The translations under genes and the position numbers were made by a program. The notes under the pieces are model-generated. The model saw only the letters and a list, made by a program, of their open reading frames with translations, was not told the DNA's origin and made no database searches. From Vitrella brassicaformis CCMP3155 (lineage: Eukaryota > Protista > Chromerida), in NCBI GenBank assembly GCA_001179505.1, contig CDMY01000389.1, forward strand, positions 1-64,000: a stretch of DNA of 64,000 bases, read 5' to 3'. Positions 2,995 to 17,728 of the stretch are shown here, in pieces. Every line of letters begins with the position of its first letter. Within the stretch, counting starts at the first letter, position 1.

Positions 2995-5840
2995 TCAAGA
3001 GCCGCGAGCGGATCCATCGCGGCGCTCAACACACATGGCGGCCTCTCCGAGATCCTGATAGGTGTTATCGTGGAAGCTGAGCTTGTACGGGCCGCCACTG
3101 AGGTTGAGTGCCGCCTGCTCAGCCAGGAAACGCTGCTGGAAGTGCCCGCTAAGACCGGTGACTGTGATTCTCTTGTGACCCTATCATTCATCAAAAAAGG
3201 CAACATGTATACACTCAGGTGTGTAGGTCTGTCTGTCTGTCTGTTGTGCGGGTCACCTTGAGCTCATCATTAAAAGAGATCACCGTGGCCATCACGTGAT
3301 TGTAAAATGTGTCCGACTTGTCACTTGCGACACCGCCTGAAAATGAAGAATACAAACGGTTGTGTCAGTCAGGCATCCCGATTTCCGATTACCTTGAATG
3401 TCGATGGAGACCTCCTCGATCGGCGGCAGCTTGTGGTTGCCCCCTCGTCCCCACAAGCATGGGCTCTGGCCAAATTCATCCTTGAGAGGTGCTATAAACA
3501 CCTTGGCATTGAGACCTATGCGTACTGACAGGCTCCTCTCCCTCCCCCTGCTGCTCATCGCCGCATGCACGCTCTCAAGAAACCGCCACACCTCACCAGC
3601 CGTCACCTGGATTGGGTTGTAGGCCTCTCCCGCGTCTCCTATTTCGATGCGTGACAGGTTTGGCATATGAGAGGCAATCTCCAGCACCCACTTCTTCTTG
3701 TCGCTATCCGCAAGAAGAGCACCGTCACCATGAAACAGGGCGGAAGGGTCGTCCCGTAGCCGCAGAGTGCGGGCGGCAGGGAATGTGTCGTCGGTGATAG
3801 TGGCGAGTTCCGTCGGCCCATGTCTATAGTTGTAGAACAGCTTGTCGGCGATCTTGGCGACTTTGCCGATGATCTTTTGGACGGTCGGGCTGCTTCTACG
3901 GCTCTGCGAGAGGAGCTCCACGTCGAACTCTTCAAAGCTGCCATCGATGTAAGTCCGAAAAATCTGCTTCGCCACCGCATCGGGATGTGCAACAGCATCA
4001 CTGACGAAACAGAGTAAAGCACGATATGTACTGTCTTGTCTCTCTACATTCTTTGTCTGATTGTCTTACATGAGCTGTGCAGTCCTCTCGCACCGCTCCA
4101 TAGACTCGGCATTGCTCTTCATCGACCCCAGGTTGACCTCAAGCTCGCGAACAGACCTCTTGACACCCCTCGCCACCATCACCTCACGCAGTCTGTCGAT
4201 GTCGGCGGGGTCGCTCTCATCTATCCGGACGCATCGCAGTGTGCGAAGCGCCGCCAGCGACTGCCCGTCGGTGGGCAGTGCACTCAGCGCATTGGCCACG
4301 CCGGCGCTCCGTCCACCGATGTGGACGCACTCGACGGCCTTGCAGTCCGCCAGCCACGACCTCTCGCCCTCCAGCCCACAGGATCGAGTGGACAGCGTCC
4401 TGACGGCGGGTGTGTGCCAGTTGCGGCCCACACGTGCGTCCAGACATGAGTTGCTGTTGTCGATCGTCGTGAGCGCGGGCAGTTGGACGGGAGCAGAGGG
4501 GGCGGGCGGCAGATCAGATGAGGGAGGAGGGTACGGGATGTGGACGCCGATATCGAGCTGGACGTCCTCGAATGACAGCTTCTCCAGCGTGCCGTCATCC
4601 GCCAACTGGCCGTGGCCATCATCATCAGATGCCGCAGCTGCCCCCTCCCCTCCTGCCCTCTCTATTCTCTTCTTGGCTGCAATGGCCGCTCGGCCGATGG
4701 CGTGACCCTCGATGAGACTCGTCCAGGTCCCGCGACACCACTTTAGCGCAGGGCGCCATCCGAAAAGAGGTCCCCAATACTCTTCTGGGTTGCGGTGCTT
4801 GATCTCTCGGATATTGGTCGATCTCTTGCCCCACTTGTGTGCCACGTCGAGTGGCATGGTCTCCCACATGTGCCGCGCCTTTTTGTCCTCACAGTCGATG
4901 GCCAGGTGGGTGTAGTTGGCGGCCGACTGATGGAAGAGGGGCGTGCCGAGGGGGCGCCAGAGGGGCGTCAGCTCCCAGGGATGCAGGTGGCCAAAGACGT
5001 TGGCCAACACGTCGTGGGACAATCGACGACGGGCCTGAAGTGACAAAGAAGGAGGACGCGTTCATTTCTATTTGGCTCTTACCGGGCTTTGGTTGATGGC
5101 CGCATTGCCGCTCTTCTTGATCAGACGATACGATGGGCCAGTCCTCACAGCCGCCTGCAATACGACAACACGACAACAGTGACGGAAAATGCGGATCCAT
5201 GCGCACATAGTGACACGCGGCCATCCATTCGTCTCACCTCAGGCTGAGCCTTTGCCTGGACCGAGCCCGCCGCAGCTGCCTGAATACTCGGTGCGGGCAC
5301 GTCTGCAGCATTGGTGAGGCTGGGGTCTCCCTGCGGGAGCTGTGCCGCGAGGGTGTTGAGTAGCCCCAGCTGAGAACCGAACGCCAAGCCCGCGGGGGAC
5401 GCAGCCTGTGAATGAACGAACGGAAAGGGGGCCATGTGCACAAGGTAGGTAGGTAAAGGGCCCTTTCCAGGTGCCTATCAGTCAGTCAGTGAATGAGTGC
5501 CTACCTGAGCGGCGATGCTCGCGGGGTCTTGACCCAGGAGGCTTGACAACGTATCCCTTACAGCACGCGCATTCGCGACAAACTGAACGGACGAAATGAA
5601 ACACGCACCACACGAGAAATCAAAAAGTAGGGTGGTGCGTGTTTGTGCTTGTGTTGCCGTTTGCCTCGCTTTCATCATCATCGCGCCTTCCGTACCTCAT
5701 TGACGTCCATGGCGAATCAGTGTGTGCATGACGGAAAACAGCGAAAAAACACGAATCTTGGGACAGATAGTTTTTGAAAAGCTCGCACGCTGTCCGATCG
5801 GACATTGCGTGAAACCGCTCTCTGTCCGATCGAACTCATC
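2995..5840 (-). CDS. Lineage-specific F-box-like/degenerate-LRR family protein, copy A (multi-exon; 5' end approximate)
   Basis: Exon ORFs 4066-5046 (RRRLSHDVLANVFGHLHPWELTPL, F-box-like; then LPALTTID/LRTLRCV LRR-like units) and 3292-3975, with a final exon ending ...CVERRDGSARGS* at 2995. Colinear with copy B. Confidence 0.6.
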
Positions 5841-6448: not shown

Positions 6449-9030
6449 CTACGCAGAGTCGCGAGTGGAGGCATCACGGCGCTCGACACACATGGAGCCG
6501 TTGCGGGTATTGAGGCTGAGCTTGTACGGGCCGCCACTAAGGTTGAGGGACGCCTGCTCAGCCAGGAAACGTTGTTGAAACTGAGTGTTCAGGCGCTCCA
6601 CTGTGGTCCTCTGGTGGCCCTGGAGTGCCACACACACATCGCCACACACATCGCCTGGCACTTTTGTGAGAGTGGTGTGGCTTGGTTTGGCGTGTGGCAA
6701 ACCTCGAGTTCATCGTTAAAAGAGGTCACAGTAGCCATGACATGCTTGTAGAATGTGTCGGCGTCGCCATCATCCACATCACCTGACACACACACACACG
6801 CACACACACACACGCACATATGCGTTGCACTGACACACCGGTCTGTCTCTTCTCGCCTCCCCCTCCCCTCACCATCAATAAGGATACGGAAGTTTTGGAT
6901 CGCCGGCAAGGCATTGCTGCCGCCGCGCCCCCACAGACAGGGGCTTTCGAGGTTCTGCAGGGGTGCTATCAATGCCGCGGCCGGCAGGTGCATCCTCAGC
7001 GTCAGCGTCCTCCCCCTCCCCTGGCTGACCAGCGCCGTCTGCAGCAGCTCGAGGAAGTCCAGCACCTCAACAAAAAGTGCGTCTTCTGTCTCGATGCACG
7101 ACAGGCTGGGCATGTTGGAGGCGATCTCGACCGCCCGCTTCTTCTTGGCCTCATTGACGAGGGCATGCTGCCGCAGCTGCAGGGTGTGGGCGGCGGGGAA
7201 TGTGTCGTCGGTGATGGCCACAGGATGCGCCTCGTCATGCCCGCTGTAGGACACCTTGCCGGCCGTCTTGGTGAATTCATCCATGATCCCCTGCATGGTG
7301 CGAGTCCCGCTGCCGCGGCGCGAGAGGAGCTCCACGGCGATAACTCCATGCCTGCCACTGTCGCACGCAATAAACGCATCGGGTTGCGCAACAGCGTCAC
7401 TGCAGAAAAGCACCACAAGACGAGCAGAGCACATGTGATGTACCCCACGTCTACTCTGACCCCTTCTCCTTCTCATGTGTCCTTACACGAGTTGTGCGGC
7501 CTTCTGCAATCTCTCCCAGTTCTCGTCTGTGTTGCTCAGAAAAACACCCACGTCGATCTTGAGCTGGCGAATGGACCGGCTGGCGCCCCTTGCCACCATC
7601 ATCTCACGCAGCCTGTCGACGTCGGCGGGCCTGTCATACTTTACGGTGAGGCATCGCAGGGTGTGAAGGGCCGACAGCGACTGTCCGTCGGCAGGCAGTG
7701 CACTCAGCATGCCGGCCGGCACGCCCTCGATCCATGCGTTGATGTCGAGCACTTCGACACCCACACAGTCGGCCAGCCATGACCTCGCGCCGCCCACCTC
7801 TTCTTCACCAATGCTGCCTCGGATGGTGAGGGTCTTGACAGCGCGTGTGTGCCACTGGCGGCCCACACGTGCCGACAGGCAATCGTCACTGGGGATGCTG
7901 TCGATCGTCGTGAGCGCGGGCAGGTGAATCGGGGCGGTAGGGGCGGGGGGCAGATCAGATGAGGGCAGAGGGTCGGGGGTGGCGACGCTGTCATCGAGCT
8001 GGACGACCTCGAATGACAGCTTCTCCAGTGTGCCCCCATCCGCCAACTGGCCGTGGCCATCATCATCAGATGCCGCAGCTGCCCCCTCCCCTCCCGCCCT
8101 CTCTATTCTCTTCTTGGCTGCGATGGCCGCTCGGCCGATGGCGTGACCCTCGATGAGACTCGTCCAGGTCCCGCGACACCACTGCGTATCCGGCGCCACA
8201 ACGATGTCGTCGGTATACTCGGGGCAGCGAATTCTGATCTCTCGGATATTGGTCGACCTCTTTCCCCACTTGTGCGCCACGGCCAGCGGCATGGTCTCCC
8301 ACATCCGCCTCGCCGTGTCGTCCTCACAGTCCATGACCACTTGAGTGTAGTTGGCGGCCGACTGATAGAAGAGGGGCGTGCCGAGGCGGCGCCAGAGGGG
8401 CGTCAGCTCCCAGGGATGCAGGTGGCCGAAGATGTTGGCCAGCTCGTCGCGGGACAATCGACGACGGGCCTGAAAGTGAGACAGAGATACCAAAGTCAAG
8501 GTGTGAGGATGGTGTTGTCAGACCCATCCTTACCAGGTCCTCATCGGCCGGAGGGTTGCCGCTTCTGTGGATCAGACGGTACGATGGACCAGGCCCCACA
8601 GCCACCTGCCGAAGACAGAGCAAGAGCCACCCATGACACCACGACAACCACAGCAACTAAAAGGTGTATCCATGTGCAGACGATGACCACACACACACGG
8701 CTATCCTTCACCTTACCTGTGCCTCTGTGTGTGTCGAGCCCAACGCAGCAGCTGCCTCTGTGGTCGATGTCAGTGCATCTACAGCGCTGGTGAGGCTGGC
8801 AGCCCACTGTTCGAGCTGCGTGGTGACGGCGTCCGACTGCAAGGCCATGGGGCCCAGCTGATAGTGCAACAGCCATGCCGCGGGCGACGAGACCTGTCAG
8901 CGAAGATACACCACAGTGGATGGCCGGCCCTTCCGCATGCCTCTCGGTCAGTCAATAAGTGTTACCCACCTGTGCGGCGATGCTGGCGGGGTCTTCGTCG
9001 AGAAGGTGTGATAGACATTCGATGATCTGT
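6449..9030 (-). CDS. Lineage-specific F-box-like/degenerate-LRR family protein, copy B (tandem paralog; 5' end approximate)
   Basis: ORFs 7483-8499, 6589-7476 and 6449-6700 align with copy A. The segment WCRGTWTSLIEGHAIGRAAIAAKKRIERAGGEGAAAASDDDGHGQLAD is nearly identical at DNA level, and the exon order is the same. Confidence 0.6.
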
Positions 9031-9375
9031 CGGCAGGCAAACATACCATACCCAACAGACAGACAATCTTTTGTCGTGAGGAAAGGATAGAAAGGCGTTC
9101 CGGCCGGTCAGTCAGCGCACCTCATCTTGAATTGTCTGCTGGTACAGCAAGCTGTCCAGCACAGCCTGGGCATTCGTCAGAACCTGGGGGACTCAAGCAC
9201 AACGGACACACCGAGGACTCAAAGATGAAGCGCTCTTTCTCCTTCGCTCTCTTCTGCCCCTCGTGTGCCGGGCTGACCTGATTGACGTCCATGGCAAAAC
9301 AGAAACGTGTGCGGGCGACTCACAACAAAGTCGCTGACGGGCTGAAACGGCCGTGGACCGCTATTTCCTCCACGC

Positions 9376-9495
9376 GAGCTCGTTGAAAGTAGTTCACATC
9401 GCCGCCCAGTGCTTGTTTGACGAACTGAGCCTATCCCGCAGCACAGCAACAAGACCTCTACCACAACGAAAGACATAGCACAACGAAAGAGTGAC
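9376..9495 (-). repeat. Inverted, decayed copy of 11162-11283 (intron 3 end + exon 4 of the fusion gene); weaker similarity may extend to ~9290
   Basis: The reverse complement reads ...tgctatgtctttcgttgtggtagaggtcttgttgctgtgctgcgggataggctcagttcgtcaaacaagcactgggcggcgatg, versus 11183 cgctatgtctttcgttgtactgaaggtcttgttgctgtgctgcgggatcggctcagttcgtcaaacaagcactgggcagtgatg. Both translate GLVAVLRDRLSSSNKHWA; the copy then hits a TGA. Confidence 0.9.
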
Positions 9496-9543
9496 GACTG
9501 CCTGTGCCGAGAGAGTTTTCCGTCTTGGGGCGGGGCGTTCGGC

Positions 9544-12500
9544 ATGGACAACATGGGGCTTCACGTGGAGAGGTTCAAGCACAAGATCGTCAGAGATCTC
9601 GCCTGGGTCATTCATTCCCAGCCTCTCATCTCAGATGGACTCGAAGATCTGCCGGCCCTCTCCCTTTCCGACCTTCTCGACGCTTCATCCACCCTGCAAT
9701 GGCTCGAGAAGCTCGACAGTGACCCATCCGAGTTGCTCGACTTCCTCGTGCGCAAGCACATCAGGCGCCTGGGGTTTCTGTATCAGTCGCTTCTGGAGTT
9801 TGTGTTTGTCCGCTGTCCCTCACTGGGCTGCGAGGCGGTGCTCTGTCAGCAGCAGATTGAAGACTCTGAGGAGAGGGGCCGCGTGATCGGGCAGATCAAG
9901 CACGTCATGTGCCTCAATCGAGGGCAGGGCAAGCAGGCCTGGCATGTGGAAAGTGCTATCAAGTTTTATGTCGACTCACGGCTCCTGGACGAGGCGGCAG
10001 ATGAGAGGACGGGACTGGCCTCGTTTTCTGCAGAGGAGAATGAGAGGCGCTCTTTGCTGCATTTCGTTGGTCCCTTCCTTCATGAGAGCCTCGCGTGGCG
10101 CCTTGTGGAGATGAACAGGAAGCTGGAGCTCTGCCGGGCGTCATCGGCCATTCAGGAGGACCTCAAGGTGAGCGTGTCATGCATGATACAAATCGGCAGA
10201 TGAAGCACACGTGTATCCCTTTGTGAATGGTTGTATGTATCGGCAGGGCCGTCTTGGTGCGTCGGAGGTGTCGTCCGTGACCTTCATCAAAGGTTACCTC
10301 TTCTACCGCCTGTATAAGCACACCGACTCTTGCGGCGGGCCCTCCCTCTGCAACCCTCATCACAACAGGGGCTGGTGGTGCCTCGACACAGCCGAGCTCG
10401 CCCATTGGGCAGATGGGCCATTCCAGTGGGCCATCCTACCCAAGATGCACTGGATGTCGCCGGTGGTGGCCATCTCAGCGCCCGATCCCCACCGCGTTTA
10501 TGTCGAAGGCGTGGCTGCGCTGCGGATCCCCGAGCTGACGTGTATGGATTTCGGTGCCCTGATGGCCGAGCTTTCGCGTCTGCGGACGGATGCGCCCTCC
10601 ACGCCTCATCTGGTGGCACAGCTGCGCGAGAGGGAGGGCGGAATATGGGTGGAGGAGTCGCGTGGGTTCCTGTTACCCAGCGATTGGGACCCGTCGACGC
10701 TATGCAACTCACTCCAGCCAATGGGTAGGCAGGCTTCTGAAATTAAGAGAGCCGAGAGAGATGGACTGGACCCCCATTGATTGATTTGTTTCCTGCTGTG
10801 CTGTGCCTCTGCCTGGCTGTCTGGGGTGTTGAGGTCTCCGTAACAAGCACGAGAAGCCCGACAACTGGTCCTACCGCTCGCTGCCTCAGCCTGAAGGACC
10901 TGAAGGACCTTCTCTCATGCCTCAAGGCAGCAGCGCCAGCCATCCATCCCCCATGTCGATAGGGCGGCTCTTCAACTGCCCGTCTGAGAGCCAGAAGCGG
11001 ACCCCTGTGTTGCGGGACGCGGCTGAGGATGAGAGTGAGGGCGAGTACCCGCTGTCCGAGTCTCCGCGACCTGGTTCAATGCCACTGCATGACCTGCTGG
11101 TCACAGCTGCGGGTGAGGGAGAAGGACCACCCTCTTGGCACAGGCAGTCGTCACTTCCAGGGTGCACTCTGTCTTGCGTTGCGCTATGTCTTTCGTTGTA
11201 CTGAAGGTCTTGTTGCTGTGCTGCGGGATCGGCTCAGTTCGTCAAACAAGCACTGGGCAGTGATGAACGTCTTCAACGAACTCAAAAATGCGACGGTAGG
11301 CCCGTTATGGGTTCTGTCATGTGGCAAGAGGAAGGATTTCTGTCATGGGTTCTGTTTCTGCCACCAGATCCACCTCTTCCACCGTCTTGCGTCGGCACCG
11401 TCGTCTGTTGTTGGAGGGCTCGCCACCACACCGACACTGATGGTCCTCGACGGCCTGGCAATCATTGGGGGCATCTCAGACGACCCTCTCGTAGGCGGTG
11501 TCCCTCACCACCCAATGGCCAGCGACGGTGAAGCCCTGGTGCGCCCGATCGGCCATCTCCTTCTCGATGCCTTGGCGAGGGCACTGCGGCACTCACGCAC
11601 ACCTAGCCCGAAGGTCAGTGGAGCTGGCGCAGCTGCAGAGGACAACAACCGCCGGAGGGGCGACGGGAGGGAGCCAGCGATGACGTCAGAAGAGAGGGAA
11701 AGGGCTGTGGCCGTTCTAGGCCAGCTGCTGAGTATGATTGTCCGCGGCGAGGGCCCTCCAGCCGGCAGGATGTGCGTCAAGCTGGTCATCAAGGCATGCC
11801 GTCTCTTCGGCCTACAGCCAGCGTCTCACAACGTCCCTACGCCGTCCTCCCATCACGCAGTCGGCACCCTCACCGACATGGCTTCCTTCGTCGACCGATA
11901 TCTGGATCAGACGGAGGTCTTGATTCAACCCCAGCTGAAGGCCAAGGAGAGGAGGGCTGGTGCGGTGCAGCGCACCATCACCGAGATGACCAGTGAGAGC
12001 GACGTGGTCGTGTTCGGCGATGACCGCAGCGACGGCGATGCGAGGGAGCGGAGGCACAGCAACACGTCGGCGAGTCAGCTGGGCGTGCAGGCCGCGAGTG
12101 GAGGCCGCGTCGCTAGTGGCCATCTGCCCGTCCGGGACGCCCTCGAGGTGAGCAGGGACTGAATGAATCACCCGCTACCTATCAGGTTATTTTCTCCCTT
12201 TTCGGTCAGGTGCTCAGCTTCTTCAGCTGTCGCCTTGACGATTCTCGTGCCGAGCGGGCGGTTCCACTGTTCGTGGCCCACGCCATCAACCACTACGCCG
12301 AGTTGGTGGATGCAACGTCGTCCTCTCTGCAGCACAGCATCTCCCCACATGGGCATCGAGCCGACGATGTGAGGCTCTACCTGACAGCTGCCCCTGCCGA
12401 CGACCCGGCTCATGACGTCAGCAAAGGCGCCCAGACGATATCGATGCCCCTGGTGGATCGCCTCGTCGCCGACTCCTGGCGCAAGAATCACATCAAGGTG

Positions 12501-14275
12501 GCGAGACGGATTGCCGCGAGATATGGCGCGTCGCTCGACTCGATGGGTCCTCCGCCCCCACACACGGGGCGGGTCAAGAGGAAGAACCAGACATCGGTCC
12601 GCGGCCTGTGCGAGGGCCTGCCTGGGTGCGTCATCGATGCCGAGCGGCAGATGGTGTGGCTCGACACGAGGGAGGGCTTGCGACAGCTATGGGCGACGTT
12701 GCAAGAGATGACGGCGTCATTTGGCGAGAGCCCCGCGCCGGTGGGGCTAGACTGTGAGTGGCATCCCCGCAATCGGCTGGGGGAGAGGAGGAGCCCTGTC
12801 AGCCTTATGCAGGTTGCCCTGCCCTGCAGCCGTGTGTTTCTGGTGGATGTCTTGACTCTGCGGACCACCGAGAGGGCCATGTTGGGGGAGGTGATTGAGT
12901 GGCTGATGCGGAAGTGTGTCGTCGTCGGTTTCTCTGTTAGTGGAGATCTCGACAGGCTCGCACAGTCGCTCGATGGCGTTTTTGTGAAGGAGGTCCCTCG
13001 CGTCGTCGATCTGCAGCGCATCTTCAGCTCCCCACACGCGCCTCTGCTGTCCCAGCCTTCAGCCCCTATCTCTGACCCCTCCCCTCCCACATGGTTCGCC
13101 CACCTTAGCAAGAGCCTCCAGCAGCCCTTTTTCGGTCTCGACACCATGTGTGCCCTGTACCTCCACCAGCGGCTCGACAAGGCCTACCAGCGGAGCTCGT
13201 GGGAAGATCGGCCACTCACCGACGCCCAGAAGGCCTACGCCGCTCTGGACGCCATAGTGCTCCTGAAGATTGCGGCGCGAGTCTTCCCTCTCCGAGACGG
13301 CTTCCTTCGCGATGACTCTGTGGCCCTCGACGAGCAGCTGCAGCGGGTGGACATCACCCGATTCTGGTTTGCTTATCGCGCGAGAGCGGCACATGTGCAG
13401 CCGACGGGCAGTGGGTCGAGTGAGACGGGGAGGGGCTATGTGTCGGATGAGGCGTACGATGACGACACATGCGAGCAGAGCGAATCGGACGCAAAGACAG
13501 CGGAGAGCATTGCTCGGCTGCTGCCCTATGACGTCAGCAGCTTCGCCTACTCGCCCGACCATCTGCATGGGCTGCGGACGCCCGCTGACGTGAGGAGGGC
13601 TCTGGACGATCTCGGCCTGGCCGCCACCCCGCTGCTCAAGATCGACCGGGTGTTTGACGGGCCGAGTGGCGATGGTGTGGCATCAGTGGTGCCGGCGGCC
13701 TCATACACAATGGTCAAGACAGTCGCCTTTGTGGCAGAGGCGGACGGCAGTGGGGATGGCGACGAGGAGCGGCGTGTGGTCGGGGCGTGTGTGTGCGTGT
13801 TGCCGCTGCATCGGAGGGCCGACAAGGCGGCACTTGGGTGTCTGGAGGTGTGGCGTGACCGCGTGGCGGATGGGTCTGGTGATCACGGGGCGCCGCTGTC
13901 AGTCCGCTTGGCTAGGTCAGGAGGCAGGCAGCGATGGGCAATGGCACTTTGAGTCACACATCTCTATGCTTTGTGTTCTCAGTGAGGGCGAGTTGTACAC
14001 AGTCTGTGGGTATCCCCGGGGCGCGCTCGGCCCGCTGGCTCTCTGCGATCCGACCGGTCTGTCAAGCGGAGGAGAACCAGACCAAACCACATATTCAATG
14101 TCTTTCCTTGTCGTTCATTCGTGCAGCGTTTGTGGTGGTGGACGCTTCGCTGATGAGTGACGATGTGGACCTGCTGTTAGGGGGCGGGGCGAGGGATGTA
14201 GTGTACCCAATGAAGGCCGCCACACTCGTGCGGGTCACGGGTACGGCTGTCACGGCGGTCGCCGTCGATGAGTGA
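9544..14275 (+). CDS. Predicted single 8-exon gene (~1392 aa): DUF1853 domain + helical linker + Mut-7/EXD3-like DEDDy 3'-5' exonuclease + YbaK/ProX aminoacyl-tRNA deacylase domain
   Basis: Exons 9544-10167, 10247-10724, 10834-11112, 11207-11295, 11368-12147, 12210-13915, 13983-14056, 14127-14275. All introns are GT-AG, 62-109 nt and phase-compatible; total 4179 nt with no internal stop. DUF1853 motifs: VRDLAW, RLGFLYQSL, HVESAIKFY, FVGP, KGYLFY, RGWW, LPKMHWMSP, SRGFLLP. ExoI GLDCEW, ExoII GFSVSGDL, ExoIII YAALDA. YbaK-like VKTVAF, RLASEGELYTVCGYPRGALGP, VVVDASL, LLLGGG. The individual domains are more certain than the fusion. Confidence 0.75.
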
Positions 14276-14556
14276 CTGGATGAGTGATGAGTAGTGAGTG
14301 AGTGGCTGAGTGTGGGTGTCACTGCGTGTGTGTGTTGATAGAGTACTGGCTGAGGTCTGGCCTGTCTGGGTAGTCAGTCATTGGTGTGAAGTGGTGTCCC
14401 GTTGACGGGAGGGGACAGAACTGACGCAGATCTCACCCCTGCAAATGTGGTGGGTGTCTGCGATTTACTTACAAATACTTATAGAGAAATAAATGCACTC
14501 AATGGCGGACGCATCAGAGCAAACATCCGCATCTCTCCCTCCCTCTTATGGCTCCC

Positions 14557-17138
14557 TCACCGGCCGCCGATGCCGGCCTCTCTCTCTTGCCACAGCTTCA
14601 GTGCCTTCTCATTGGCCGGCACCGACACACGATAGTCATCTAATTGTGTCTCCAGCCCACGCAGTGCATGACCGTGCAGCAGCGTCAGCTCGTCCCGCTC
14701 AGCCTCCAGCCTGCTGCTGCTCTCCTCATCCACACCACCATCGACACCCACGGGCTGAGGTGCTTCTGATTCCTGCCCCTCTGCCACATCGGTGCGTCTG
14801 TATGGTCTCTTCTCGTAGTGCATTATGAGAGCCTCGGCGTGGCAGAGGGCGTTCTGGAAAGCCTCGCACATGGCGGTGCTTGATGCGAGCAGGTTCCTCA
14901 GCACGGCGGCCTGGTTGGCACTGCACAGCAGCTGACACCACACACACACATAGAGAGAGAGAGCGAGGAGGTGGGCGACCGCATATGGGAACCATATTTG
15001 GCACCTTTTCATTGATGTGTGTGATGTCTCCCTCCAGCTCCTGTTTCTCCATCTCCAGCCTTAAAGCACCAATGGCCAACAACACATATCACATCATACG
15101 CCTACATGGCGAGACGGCAAAGGCCTGCCTTCTCTTGCATCTGACCTGCCTACCTGTTACTTGTGGCCAGCTGTGCCTGGTATCTGTCTGTCAGGTCGTT
15201 GAGCTGCTGTGCCAAATCCTGCTTGGCTTCGATGAGCTTCTGGTTCTTGTCGACGTAGTCATACATTCTCTTCTTGCTGGTCTGCAGCAGACTCTCGGCA
15301 TCCTTCAACGCCCTCTTGTCGCCCATGTCAAAATTAACACCGCTACCCTGTCAGGCAATATGACAGCAACACTCGTGTGTGTCCCTCTCCTCTCCCTCCC
15401 CATCTCTGTGTGTATTTAGGCTTACAGGCGAGACATCGTACTTGACTGTCGATGTGAGCCCCAGGACCTCTTCCCTGCCGTGGTCGAGATGCAGGAACGA
15501 CAGCGACCGCAGCTCCTCTGTCTCCGCGCCAGCCTGTGTTGTCACGCCGATCCGCCTCCCCCCATACACCACCAAGGCACCCATGTGCTGATCGAATGTC
15601 GTCCTGGCATACAGCCGGCGGGGCAGCGGGGGTATGCCACCGATAAAGGGCGTCACCCATATCCTGGCCTTGTCGTCCAGATTGAGCAAAAAGACCGTAC
15701 CGACAAACCTGGTGGTGGTGTCTTTGCTGCCGGGCTGGTACGTCTCGCCGCCCCACAGGACGATCTGCGGCTGTGGCGTGCGCATGACGGCCATCGTGTG
15801 GCCGAACATCGGGCCGGGTGGGGTGCCTGCCGCTTCAACAGGCTCCCATCTGGCACTGCAAATACACACAGACACACACCGGCAGAGACATAGAAAGAAG
15901 ATCTTTGAACGCATTTCCGCTTGCTTACTTACGTGTTGCAGTCATATCTGTGGAGGTCGTCGAGGGGCATGTCATTGGTTTCCCCTCCATAAAGGTAGAG
16001 GTATTGGCCACAACCCACCATAGCCCCGCTGTGCCGGGCACACGGACATATCCGGGAGGAGGGAGCAGGAAACGATGGCGACGGTGCAACGGCTCCGCTC
16101 TGCATGCATGTACCGATCCATGGCAGGAAAGAGAAACGCATTGCGCCTATGGATTGTTCTTCTGCAGTCACTCACCCTGAGTTTTGTCCAGTAGATTTCA
16201 GTCACTTCCTTGCCCGACGCCCTCTTTTCGCGCAGAGAGTCGGTGAGTGAGGGCAGCACACTCAGCCCCCACATGTCGCCAAACACCCAGCCTTCAGGCA
16301 TGCCCCTACCACCGAACAGCCATCCCACATTCATGTGCCTAGCCGACATAAACAGAGAGACGGAGACACAAAGCGATAAATGTGTGGCTGCCGGTCCGGC
16401 CTTTGTGTCTTTTGCGTTTGGACATACCTACCATGTGTGCAGGGCGCTTTCTCTTGGCTCGGGGCAGACGCCATTGCGAAAGAAGGGAAACACGCGGTGC
16501 CAATGCATTCGGGACAGATCCAATACAAAAGTCTGATCCATCCAGCCAGCCAGCCAGCCAGCCATCCATCCAACATCAAGGAAGCCGCCAAGTGCTGCAT
16601 GCACTGTCCTTGCAATGCTTCCTACTTGGCTGGTGCTCTGCCGCATCTCATCCTGTCCCCTGAAGGCACAGACAGCACTCGCGTGCATAGAATACATGAG
16701 CCACCCGCACAGCCGTGCAATAGTCGCACTGACCCGAAGACGACCATGTAATTGCCAATTTTGCCGCCCTGCTTGGCGGACGTGAGTGAGCACACCCAGC
16801 TGGCATGATGGGCCGTCGGCTTCGGCAGCTCTCCGTTGCAACTGGCAAGGCCCCACGTCCATCTTGGGCCGACGGTGGCTGTTGTGTCGGTGAGCCTCTC
16901 GACGGTGTAGACGGCATTGTCCTTGCCCTTTGCAGTGAGGCCGCCATACAGCACCAGGGAGGGCGAAGCTGTGTCCGCTGACGGATTCCAGTGAAGAGAA
17001 CATCCTGAACAAGGTACGCAACAATCCGTGCACTCAAACGGAATGTCAGGTCAATGCATGGGGCAGCTGACCGGAGCGAACAGGTGGGGGGTTGCCCCGC
17101 GAGACGTCAATGGAGGTCCAACACAGACTCTGAGCCAT
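14557..17138 (-). CDS. Kelch-repeat protein with C-terminal coiled coil (multi-exon)
   Basis: Repeated kelch units: GNPPPVRSG, LVLYGG, PKPTAHHAS, WLFGG...FGDMWGL, ARHSGAMV...LYLYGGE...LDDLHRY, GPMFGHTMA...IVLWGGE, LVVYGG. The C-terminal exons are helical and acidic. ATG at 17138 is inferred. Confidence 0.8.
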
Positions 17139-17728
17139 CAAAACTTGTCGAGAACCGAAGACAGGCGAAAAATCTCGACGAGCGATCATCCTGATCGCTG
17201 TTTAAGGAAAGGCCGGCGACAGCCGGTGCCTGGTGTTCCTTCATCTCCCTCGAGCCCTGCCTTCAAGTTCAAGCCCATCGCCGAAGGCCAAGTGCATTTC
17301 GCTATTGTGGTATTTCATTTCAAGCACAGCATCTGACACAGACGACATGGACTTTCGTCATTGCCCAGCTCCTTCAGTCATACAAGACTATGCCATGCCT
17401 GCCCTTGGATCTTCCGGCGCTGCTCCGCCTTGCTACGCCTTGCTCACAAGACGGGCACACTCGCTGTATGAGATATACCTCATCCCCAATCTACTACCCA
17501 GCCTGCAATGTGAGATTATTCGCACATTGTCAGCCCTCAACGTGAAGGTGCCTTCCGGCAATCGACCCTTTAAGCTTCCCTTCGAGAAAGCGCCTCCGTT
17601 GGGTCAGAATCGAGATCTGAAAGTCATTTAGAGGTTCCTTCCTGACCTACCACAATATTCGTCCACTCTCTTCTCGATCAACGTGGCGTTCGAGAATGGG
17701 ATTTTGACAGCGTGTGTTGTGTTGACAG

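Follow-up and report, generated by a model that had tools for sequence, protein, structure and literature searches.

Exonucleases of the Mut-7 type are known for their roles in RNA silencing and in the trimming of small RNAs, and YbaK/ProX domains are proofreaders of mischarged tRNA that occur as stand-alone proteins or embedded in synthetases. In the chromerid Vitrella brassicaformis CCMP3155, a locus on contig CDMY01000389.1 (assembly GCA_001179505.1) seems to bring an exonuclease and a YbaK-like domain of these kinds together with a third module, DUF1853, in one polypeptide. The stretch analysed here, referred to as the window, comprises positions 1 to 64,000 of this contig, and the gene occupies positions 9544-14275 of its forward strand.

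The closest described systems are the Mut-7/Nibbler/EXD3 proteins (C. elegans MUT-7; Drosophila Nibbler, PDB 7jw2; human EXD3) which, like the Vitrella protein, contain a DEDDy exonuclease of the RNase D/WRN type. The C-terminal Mut7-C domain that defines Mut-7 is shared by one relative of the Vitrella protein (P0157, described below), whereas the Vitrella protein lacks it and has, in addition to the exonuclease, DUF1853 at the N-terminus and a YbaK-like domain at the C-terminus. Mut7-C (PF01927) was absent from the Vitrella protein in a Pfam search, and the transcript ends at position 14442. No homology (hhalign probability 0.1) was found between the middle region, which precedes the exonuclease domain, and the N-terminal parts of relatives that carry Mut7-C. 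An exonuclease and a tRNA-editing domain in a single protein, as in Vitrella, also occur in Mut7 proteins of Saprolegnia and Aphanomyces, which bear an aminoacyl-tRNA editing domain (Matelska et al., 2017, PMC5499597). This domain is mentioned there in one sentence without functional data, and the oomycete architecture is described as exonuclease-tRNA_edit-Mut7-C with DUF1853 unmentioned, whereas that of Vitrella is DUF1853-exonuclease-tRNA_edit without Mut7-C. Chromera velia Cvel_22497 (A0A0G4GM29, 1933 aa) has these three domains in an identical order. With the Vitrella protein itself set aside, it is the top match of the exonuclease exon (E 4e-17), and over the linker and the middle region the two proteins are collinear. 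Cvel_22497 differs in its low identity (about 25-37%), in many low-complexity insertions and in a tRNA_edit match of 24.0 bits, just under the Pfam cut-off.

The individual domains have described counterparts as well. Free-standing YbaK/ProX deacylases (H. influenzae YbaK, 1dbx; T. thermophilus ProX, 2cx5/2z0k; A. pernix APE2540, 1wdv) have the fold, the catalytic lysine, the GXXXP loop and the GGG motif in common with Vitrella, in which, unlike in these enzymes, the domain forms the C-terminal part of a large nuclease and carries a Vitrella-specific insertion after the lysine strand. Bacterial DUF1853/COG3782 proteins (about 310 aa, predicted PD-(D/E)XK) share with Vitrella the full-length Pfam match and the H-x-E-x-x-x-K motif, but they stand alone and have the motif-II Asp and the motif-I Glu of YFE, where the fusion proteins have Lys and Ala/Gln, respectively.

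Literature searches for the combinations of Mut7-C with YbaK and of PF04073 with PF01612 found no paper. An initial annotation of this DNA, made from the sequence alone, had presented the fusion as hidden and not described, and in both respects it went too far. The protein is already in NCBI and UniProt with these domains through automatic annotation, Mut7 with tRNA editing is noted in PMC5499597, and eukaryotic DUF1853 is reported to sit inside much longer proteins (Laganeckas et al., 2010, PMC3045609). Known already, then, are the separate domains, the database protein and two pairings mentioned in passing; uncharacterised are the triple/quadruple architecture, the way it is spread across alveolates and stramenopiles, and a subfamily of DUF1853 with an Asp-to-Lys replacement.

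Gene structure of the Vitrella locus

Rebuilt from the window sequence, the coding sequence spans 4179 nt in 8 exons and 7 introns, has its sole stop at the end and encodes 1392 aa. All seven introns run from GT to AG, and the last exon position before each of them is G. The initial annotation, which had joined separate open reading frames (ORFs) through seven such introns into a stop-free coding sequence of this length, was right on this point, and the same splice model is publicly annotated: it equals the database protein CEM08905.1 (A0A0G4F965, here P0001) from the second ATG (9553) onward. P0001 has 1389 aa, being 3 codons shorter at the start; it was recovered at 100% identity when the large exon served as query in an exhaustive search of proteins, and it carries the database name '3'-5' exonuclease domain-containing protein'. 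The DNA is GC-rich and the introns are short, with lower GC than the exons. The parts of the transcript are as follows.

9544-10167, forward strand: exon 1, first half of DUF1853 (Pfam profile positions 1-157, E 3.8e-19; family profile match at 9568-10143, E 4e-49)
10168-10246, forward strand: intron 1, 79 nt, GT..AG, GC 0.47, without coding signal
10247-10724, forward strand: exon 2, second half of DUF1853 (Pfam profile positions 170-284, E 3e-15; also matched by the family profile)
10725-10833, forward strand: intron 2, 109 nt, G|GTAGGC..AG, the junction that ties DUF1853 to the remainder; its retention leads to the stop TGA at 10778-10780
10834-11112, forward strand: exon 3, low-complexity linker, codon log-odds +0.26, its end collinear with Chromera
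11113-11206, forward strand: intron 3, 94 nt, GT..AG
11207-11295, forward strand: exon 4, mostly within the right arm of an inverted repeat, codon log-odds +0.64
11296-11367, forward strand: intron 4, 72 nt, GT..AG
11368-12147, forward strand: exon 5, middle region, with the helices RPIGHLLLDA and CVKLVIKACR kept in Chromera, Alexandrium and Aphanomyces
12148-12209, forward strand: intron 5, 62 nt, GT..AG
12210-13915, forward strand: exon 6, end of the middle region, entire DEDDy domain and first two-thirds of the YbaK-like domain (ORF 12210-13952)
13916-13982, forward strand: intron 6, 67 nt, spliced contig in RNA run X1
13983-14056, forward strand: exon 7, from RNA contigs and the exon model
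14057-14126, forward strand: intron 7, 70 nt, spliced contig in RNA run X1
14127-14275, forward strand: exon 8, carrying the stop TGA, from RNA contigs and the exon model
14276-14442, forward strand: 3' untranslated region, running to the RNA contig end (record 4 of X1 stops at 14442)

The fusion of exonuclease and YbaK-like domain is solid, because the exonuclease domain and the first two-thirds of the YbaK-like domain share one uninterrupted exon; RNA contigs also show the two domains to be continuous. That DUF1853 belongs to the same gene is very probable, since the codon usage of the linker exons, the collinearity with Chromera and the presence of the same order in other lineages all favour it, and the public gene model of Vitrella is probably right. 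Under a codon model for which exons 1, 2 and 6 were the training set, exons 3, 4 and 5 have positive log-odds per codon in the model frame (exon 5, +0.28), with both other frames negative, and in this they resemble exons 7 and 8, which are confirmed by RNA. The Chromera protein Cvel_22497 aligns collinearly from DUF1853 across the linker into exon 5, with a sub-alignment spanning exons 3-5 at E 6e-6. For the 54 residues across the junctions of exons 3, 4 and 5 the score against Chromera was reached by 5 of 1000 shuffles, and within exon 4 the stretch VTAAGLVAVL...HLFHRL matches VTGTGLVCRL...TFVRL of Chromera. No Pfam family was matched by exon 5 in the profile search.

Several results weigh against a single gene. 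The sole RNA run that holds the locus (X1) provides contigs for 12276-14442 (12276-12594, 12889-13344 and 13328-13887 in exon 6), and these confirm introns 6 and 7 only; RNA contigs for 9000-12151 were not found in the searched runs, which leaves introns 1-5, including the junctions 10724/10834 and 11112/11207, unconfirmed. A second RNA search, aimed at 9544-11295, returned no RNA run holding that stretch. At position 10724, a family profile built without Vitrella scores the spliced and the read-on versions alike (100 vs 102 bits), and the same profile did not detect the middle region of Vitrella. Moreover, in-frame ATGs at 10917 and 11264, together with the upstream-duplicated segment 11135-11280, would allow a separate or alternative transcript for the exonuclease and YbaK-like domains. 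In a two-gene arrangement, a two-exon DUF1853 protein would stop at the TGA at 10778-10780, which lies only 18 codons past the proposed donor, and a separate exonuclease-YbaK gene would start from ATG 10917 or 11264; both the public and the initial models would then be chimeric, or an ancestral fusion gene would have been split secondarily. The right arm of the inverted repeat copies sequence just 5' of the gene start and directly precedes ATG 11264, so that it could carry a promoter or untranslated-region function for such a gene, and none of the RNA contigs found spans the junctions in question. We nevertheless regard two genes as improbable. Only 137 nt separate TGA 10780 from ATG 10917, and the 18 read-on codons from donor 10724 to TGA 10778 look non-coding (-0.77 per codon), whereas exons 3 and 4 resemble coding sequence when read in the model frame, and collinearity with the Chromera protein extends through exons 3-5. 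In addition, the identical fused order exists as uninterrupted ORFs in other sources.

Contigs from DNA runs match the assembly along the whole stretch. A joint 9298->13562 seen in DNA runs X2 and X3 is not a rearrangement, as it rests on 21-23-nt matches of another contig. An early reading, in which DUF1853 was a separate gene mis-merged with its neighbour (own stop, flanking inverted repeat), was downgraded in view of the conserved architecture and the codon usage.

The three domains and their conserved residues

In the Pfam search all three domains that had been named from the sequence alone were matched in the expected order, tRNA_edit just over its cut-off. The domains and the DUF1853 motif positions discussed below map to the window as follows.

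12654-13274, forward strand: DEDDy 3'-5' exonuclease domain (P0001 896-1102, PF01612), with D928 and E930 at 12750-12758
13611-14269, forward strand: YbaK/ProX-like domain (P0001 about 1215-1388), interrupted by introns 6 and 7, with lysine K1250 at 13716-13718
9898-9900, forward strand: codon of the motif-II Lys (K116 of P0001), from alignment A3
9949-9963, forward strand: motif III E-x-x-x-K (E133...K137 of P0001), kept; from alignment A3, motif as in PMC3045609

The exonuclease domain matches DNA_pol_A_exo1 (PF01612) with E 9e-17 and 61.8 bits (cut-off 23.6). Its DEDDy residues, proposed earlier from the motifs GLDCEW (D928, E930), SGDL (D993) and YAALD (Y1090, D1094), proved invariant in the family alignment (A2). 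The best PDB sequence match is the Mut-7 homolog 7jw2 (2.2e-5), with WRN, RNase D and EXD2 close behind.

The C-terminal region is less evident at the level of Pfam. The tRNA_edit match (PF04073, P0001 1311-1376) has an E-value of 7.7e-6 and 26.4 bits against a cut-off of 25.5, while relatives reach 41-52 bits, and no bacterial deacylase equivalog was assigned by NCBIfam, whose YbaK equivalog models score 30-50 bits against a cut-off of 153. The PDB sequence match of this region is the YbaK-like protein APE2540 (1wdv, E 1.3e-4). An AlphaFold model built from 32 homologous domains (predicted local distance difference test, pLDDT, 84.5) matches the ProX and YbaK trans-editing enzymes in Foldseek with probability 1.00 and TM 0.70-0.79, and every one of the 29 PDB matches at E<=1e-3 has the YbaK/ProX/ProRS-INS fold, so that the fold proposed for this domain is confirmed in the predicted structure. 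In the alignment of these 32 YbaK-like domains (A4), the lysine of VKT (K1250) and the GXXXP loop (G1329...P1333, GALGP in Vitrella), both of which the initial annotation had singled out, are nearly invariant, and the GGG motif is conserved too.

The DUF1853 match (PF08907, P0001 14-347; E 1e-36, 127 bits) covers profile positions 1-284 of 285. DUF1853 is named in only three papers found in a literature search; a study that noted its unusual motif III, EXXXK, placed it among the PD-(D/E)XK nucleases (Laganeckas et al., 2010, PMC3045609), and its function has been listed as unknown (Steczkiewicz et al., 2012). A PDB sequence search with the domain gave no match. The predicted structure is of high confidence (pLDDT 92.4) with weak Foldseek matches; its VIA matches (Z 4-6.5) are mostly PD-(D/E)XK nucleases and extend over residues ~70-245. 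On this structural model the module is predicted to have a PD-(D/E)XK core fold. When 14 fusion domains from eukaryotes were aligned with 21 DUF1853 proteins that stand alone and are mostly bacterial (A3), the bacterial motifs read YFE..., GE[YF]D[FL] and HWExxVK. The eukaryotic fusion members all have GQ[IL]K, in which Lys replaces the metal-binding Asp that bacteria have in motif II, and in all of them the first Glu of motif I (of YFE) is Ala or Gln. The HxExxxK motif is retained in all fusion members, with H131 and E133 invariant and K137 nearly so. Judged from this alignment, the fused eukaryotic DUF1853 domains form a distinct Asp-to-Lys subfamily, new here, and are unlikely to be canonical Mg-dependent endonucleases.

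Distribution of the architecture and candidate functions

The order DUF1853-exonuclease-YbaK was found in at least 12 distinct protein clusters, which belong to Chromera, Alexandrium, Breviolum, Aphanomyces and uncultured eukaryotes, the latter accounting for at least 8 of them. These come from a DUF1853 query search restricted to long proteins and, separately, from the relatives of the exonuclease exon, the best 150 of which were analysed with local hidden Markov models and Pfam. The long-protein search recovered DUF1853 plus exonuclease in Aphanomyces stellatus and A. astaci, and DUF1853 plus exonuclease plus tRNA_edit in metagenomes and Logan assemblies. Among the 150 relatives the triple order occurs in Chromera velia Cvel_22497, Alexandrium monilatum A0A7S4QV86 (recorded only in UniRef and probably transcriptome-derived), Breviolum minutum and several uncultured eukaryotes; one such uncultured-eukaryote contig also bears POLO-box, HSP70 and rhomboid genes. 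Three proteins, P0153 (948 aa), P0155 (1461 aa) and P0157 (1754 aa), have the triple order as uninterrupted ORFs on contigs (L002, L003 and L004) and are therefore independent of splicing models; by Pfam, P0157 additionally has a C-terminal Mut7-C domain. Effrenium voratum has DUF1853 plus exonuclease by Pfam. Chromera, dinoflagellates and stramenopiles had been suggested as lineages in which to look for this architecture, and it is present in all three. As far as can be told from these sequences, the Vitrella protein is a member of a conserved, uncharacterised family of alveolates and stramenopiles. A quick tree of the exonuclease domain is largely unresolved, and a single origin of the fusion is neither demonstrated nor excluded by it.

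Other layouts among the 150 best relatives are exonuclease-YbaK, YbaK-exonuclease (13) and exonuclease-YbaK-Mut7-C (9), and an ESM Atlas cluster of 74 members, in which oomycetes are commonest, has exonuclease plus tRNA_edit plus Mut7-C. The 13 relatives with an N-terminal YbaK-like domain (e.g., P0095, P0012, P0041, P0004 and P0017) suggest that the YbaK/DEDDy pairing exists in both orders. Two metagenome relatives carry further modules: in P0134 ankyrin repeats are inserted into the DUF1853 region, and in P0011 a PG_binding_1 domain and a weak R3H match lie between DUF1853 and the exonuclease.

The layout of the family starts with a DUF1853 domain with the motif-II Lys, followed by a divergent and mostly helical middle region, the DEDDy exonuclease with its full set of catalytic residues and the YbaK/ProX fold with its catalytic lysine and GXXXP loop and, in some members, the PIN-like RNase Mut7-C at the C-terminus. 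Such a protein may be an RNA-processing or decay enzyme directed at 3' ends. Aminoacylated or CCA-type substrates are suggested because an exonuclease of the Mut-7/RNase D type is constantly paired with an apparently intact YbaK pocket. In the simplest reading, this pocket would recognise, and probably deacylate, an aminoacylated or CCA-type 3' end, after which the exonuclease would trim the RNA in 3'-5' direction. The DUF1853 module is more likely to be a nucleic-acid-binding or non-canonical nuclease module than a standard Mg-dependent endonuclease. Taken as a whole, one 8-exon gene that belongs to an alveolate/stramenopile family and would encode a 3'-end-directed RNA enzyme is the reading that we consider likely. 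It is tempered by three points at the level of the domains. The Pfam tRNA_edit match is marginal in Vitrella itself, the deacylate-then-trim mechanism is derived from domain functions, and the Asp-to-Lys replacement argues against part of the three-activity picture that had been drawn initially, in that a cleavage step by DUF1853 is doubtful because the motif-II Asp is Lys in all fusion members.

A single gene could also act without any link to tRNA, the YbaK fold being a non-catalytic binder of 3' nucleotides or oligonucleotides in an enzyme that trims the 3' ends of small or other RNAs in silencing, as Mut-7 and Nibbler do. The exonuclease is nearest to a Mut-7 homolog, one member of the family bears Mut7-C, the NCBIfam YbaK equivalogs are far under their cut-off, and several solved YbaK-fold proteins (1vki, 3op6) have been deposited merely as putative oligonucleotide-binding proteins. 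However, the catalytic lysine, the GXXXP loop and the GGG motif persist in 32 diverged domains, and a pure scaffold would be expected to lose them; we see this possibility as unlikely, though deserving of attention. Still less probable is an enzyme of DNA repair or processing in which the PD-(D/E)XK module and a WRN-like exonuclease act on DNA flaps or ends. WRN and EXD2 are among the nearest solved relatives of the exonuclease, and the top structural matches of the DUF1853 model are DNA nucleases such as R2 RLE, FokI, FAN1 and Hjc, but the PD-(D/E)XK module is without its motif-II Asp and the constant partner is a domain of tRNA-editing fold, accompanied by the Mut7-C RNase in some members, which makes this reading very improbable.

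The proposed 3'-end-directed RNA enzyme can be given a more specific form, which we offer as a speculative and on balance doubtful extension: a machine dedicated to monitoring or degrading charged tRNA or tRNA-like 3' ends in protists of the SAR group (stramenopiles, alveolates and rhizarians). Here the YbaK-like domain would remove the aminoacyl group from the CCA end, or sense it there, and so license 3'-5' trimming of the Mut-7 type, by which the chemistry of aminoacyl-tRNA editing would be tied to RNA decay or to the biogenesis of small RNAs; the Asp-to-Lys DUF1853 module would serve as a clamp on structured RNA or as a metal-independent RNase, and in Vitrella a 145-nt inverted repeat could bring isoform or double-stranded RNA (dsRNA)-based self-regulation. 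The repeated fusion of YbaK and Mut-7-type domains in many protists, often with a third or fourth domain of nuclease fold, suggests an unstudied pathway that couples the aminoacylation state of 3' ends to RNA degradation or processing. The member lineages are of ecological and economic importance, including dinoflagellate symbionts, oomycete pathogens and the chromerids, which are related to apicomplexans. Since every domain has clear and mutable catalytic residues, the family is easy to test in vitro.

The inverted repeat and neighbouring genes

The DUF1853 exons are bracketed by an inverted repeat of 145 nt, about 90% complementary and with one 17-nt indel, of which only two copies exist within the window.

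9385-9500, unstranded: left arm of the inverted repeat, which lies 44-160 nt before the start codon
11135-11280, unstranded: right arm of the inverted repeat, which takes in the 3' portion of intron 3 and the greater part of exon 4

The RNA duplex that the two arms could form, should both be transcribed, has a predicted -199 kcal/mol, as against -57 +/- 6 for shuffled sequences. The upstream arm is probably the copy, because exon 4 looks coding and is collinear with Chromera. Exons 1-3 could be looped out of the pre-mRNA by the repeat, or the repeat could be the trace of a past rearrangement; it may serve alternative isoforms or dsRNA-based regulation, or have no role at all.

Further upstream, the minus-strand ORFs 4066-5046 (326 aa) and 7483-8499 (338 aa) are paralogous and share long near-identical stretches (…RRRLS.D.LAN.FGHLHPWELTPLW…), and the small ORFs 4889-5224 and 8324-8656 that lie beside them resemble each other as well. 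The pattern points to a segment of roughly 3.4 kb that was duplicated in tandem upstream of the exonuclease gene. A public model at 6449-9292 (714 aa, no Pfam match) joins one duplicate copy to upstream exons. On the other side, the convergent neighbour at 14557-17189 on the minus strand is a Kelch/beta-propeller protein of 635 aa in the public annotation, whose RNA contig (run X8) starts at 14623; the exonuclease transcript ends at 14442, which leaves about 180 nt between the two, a very tight spacing.

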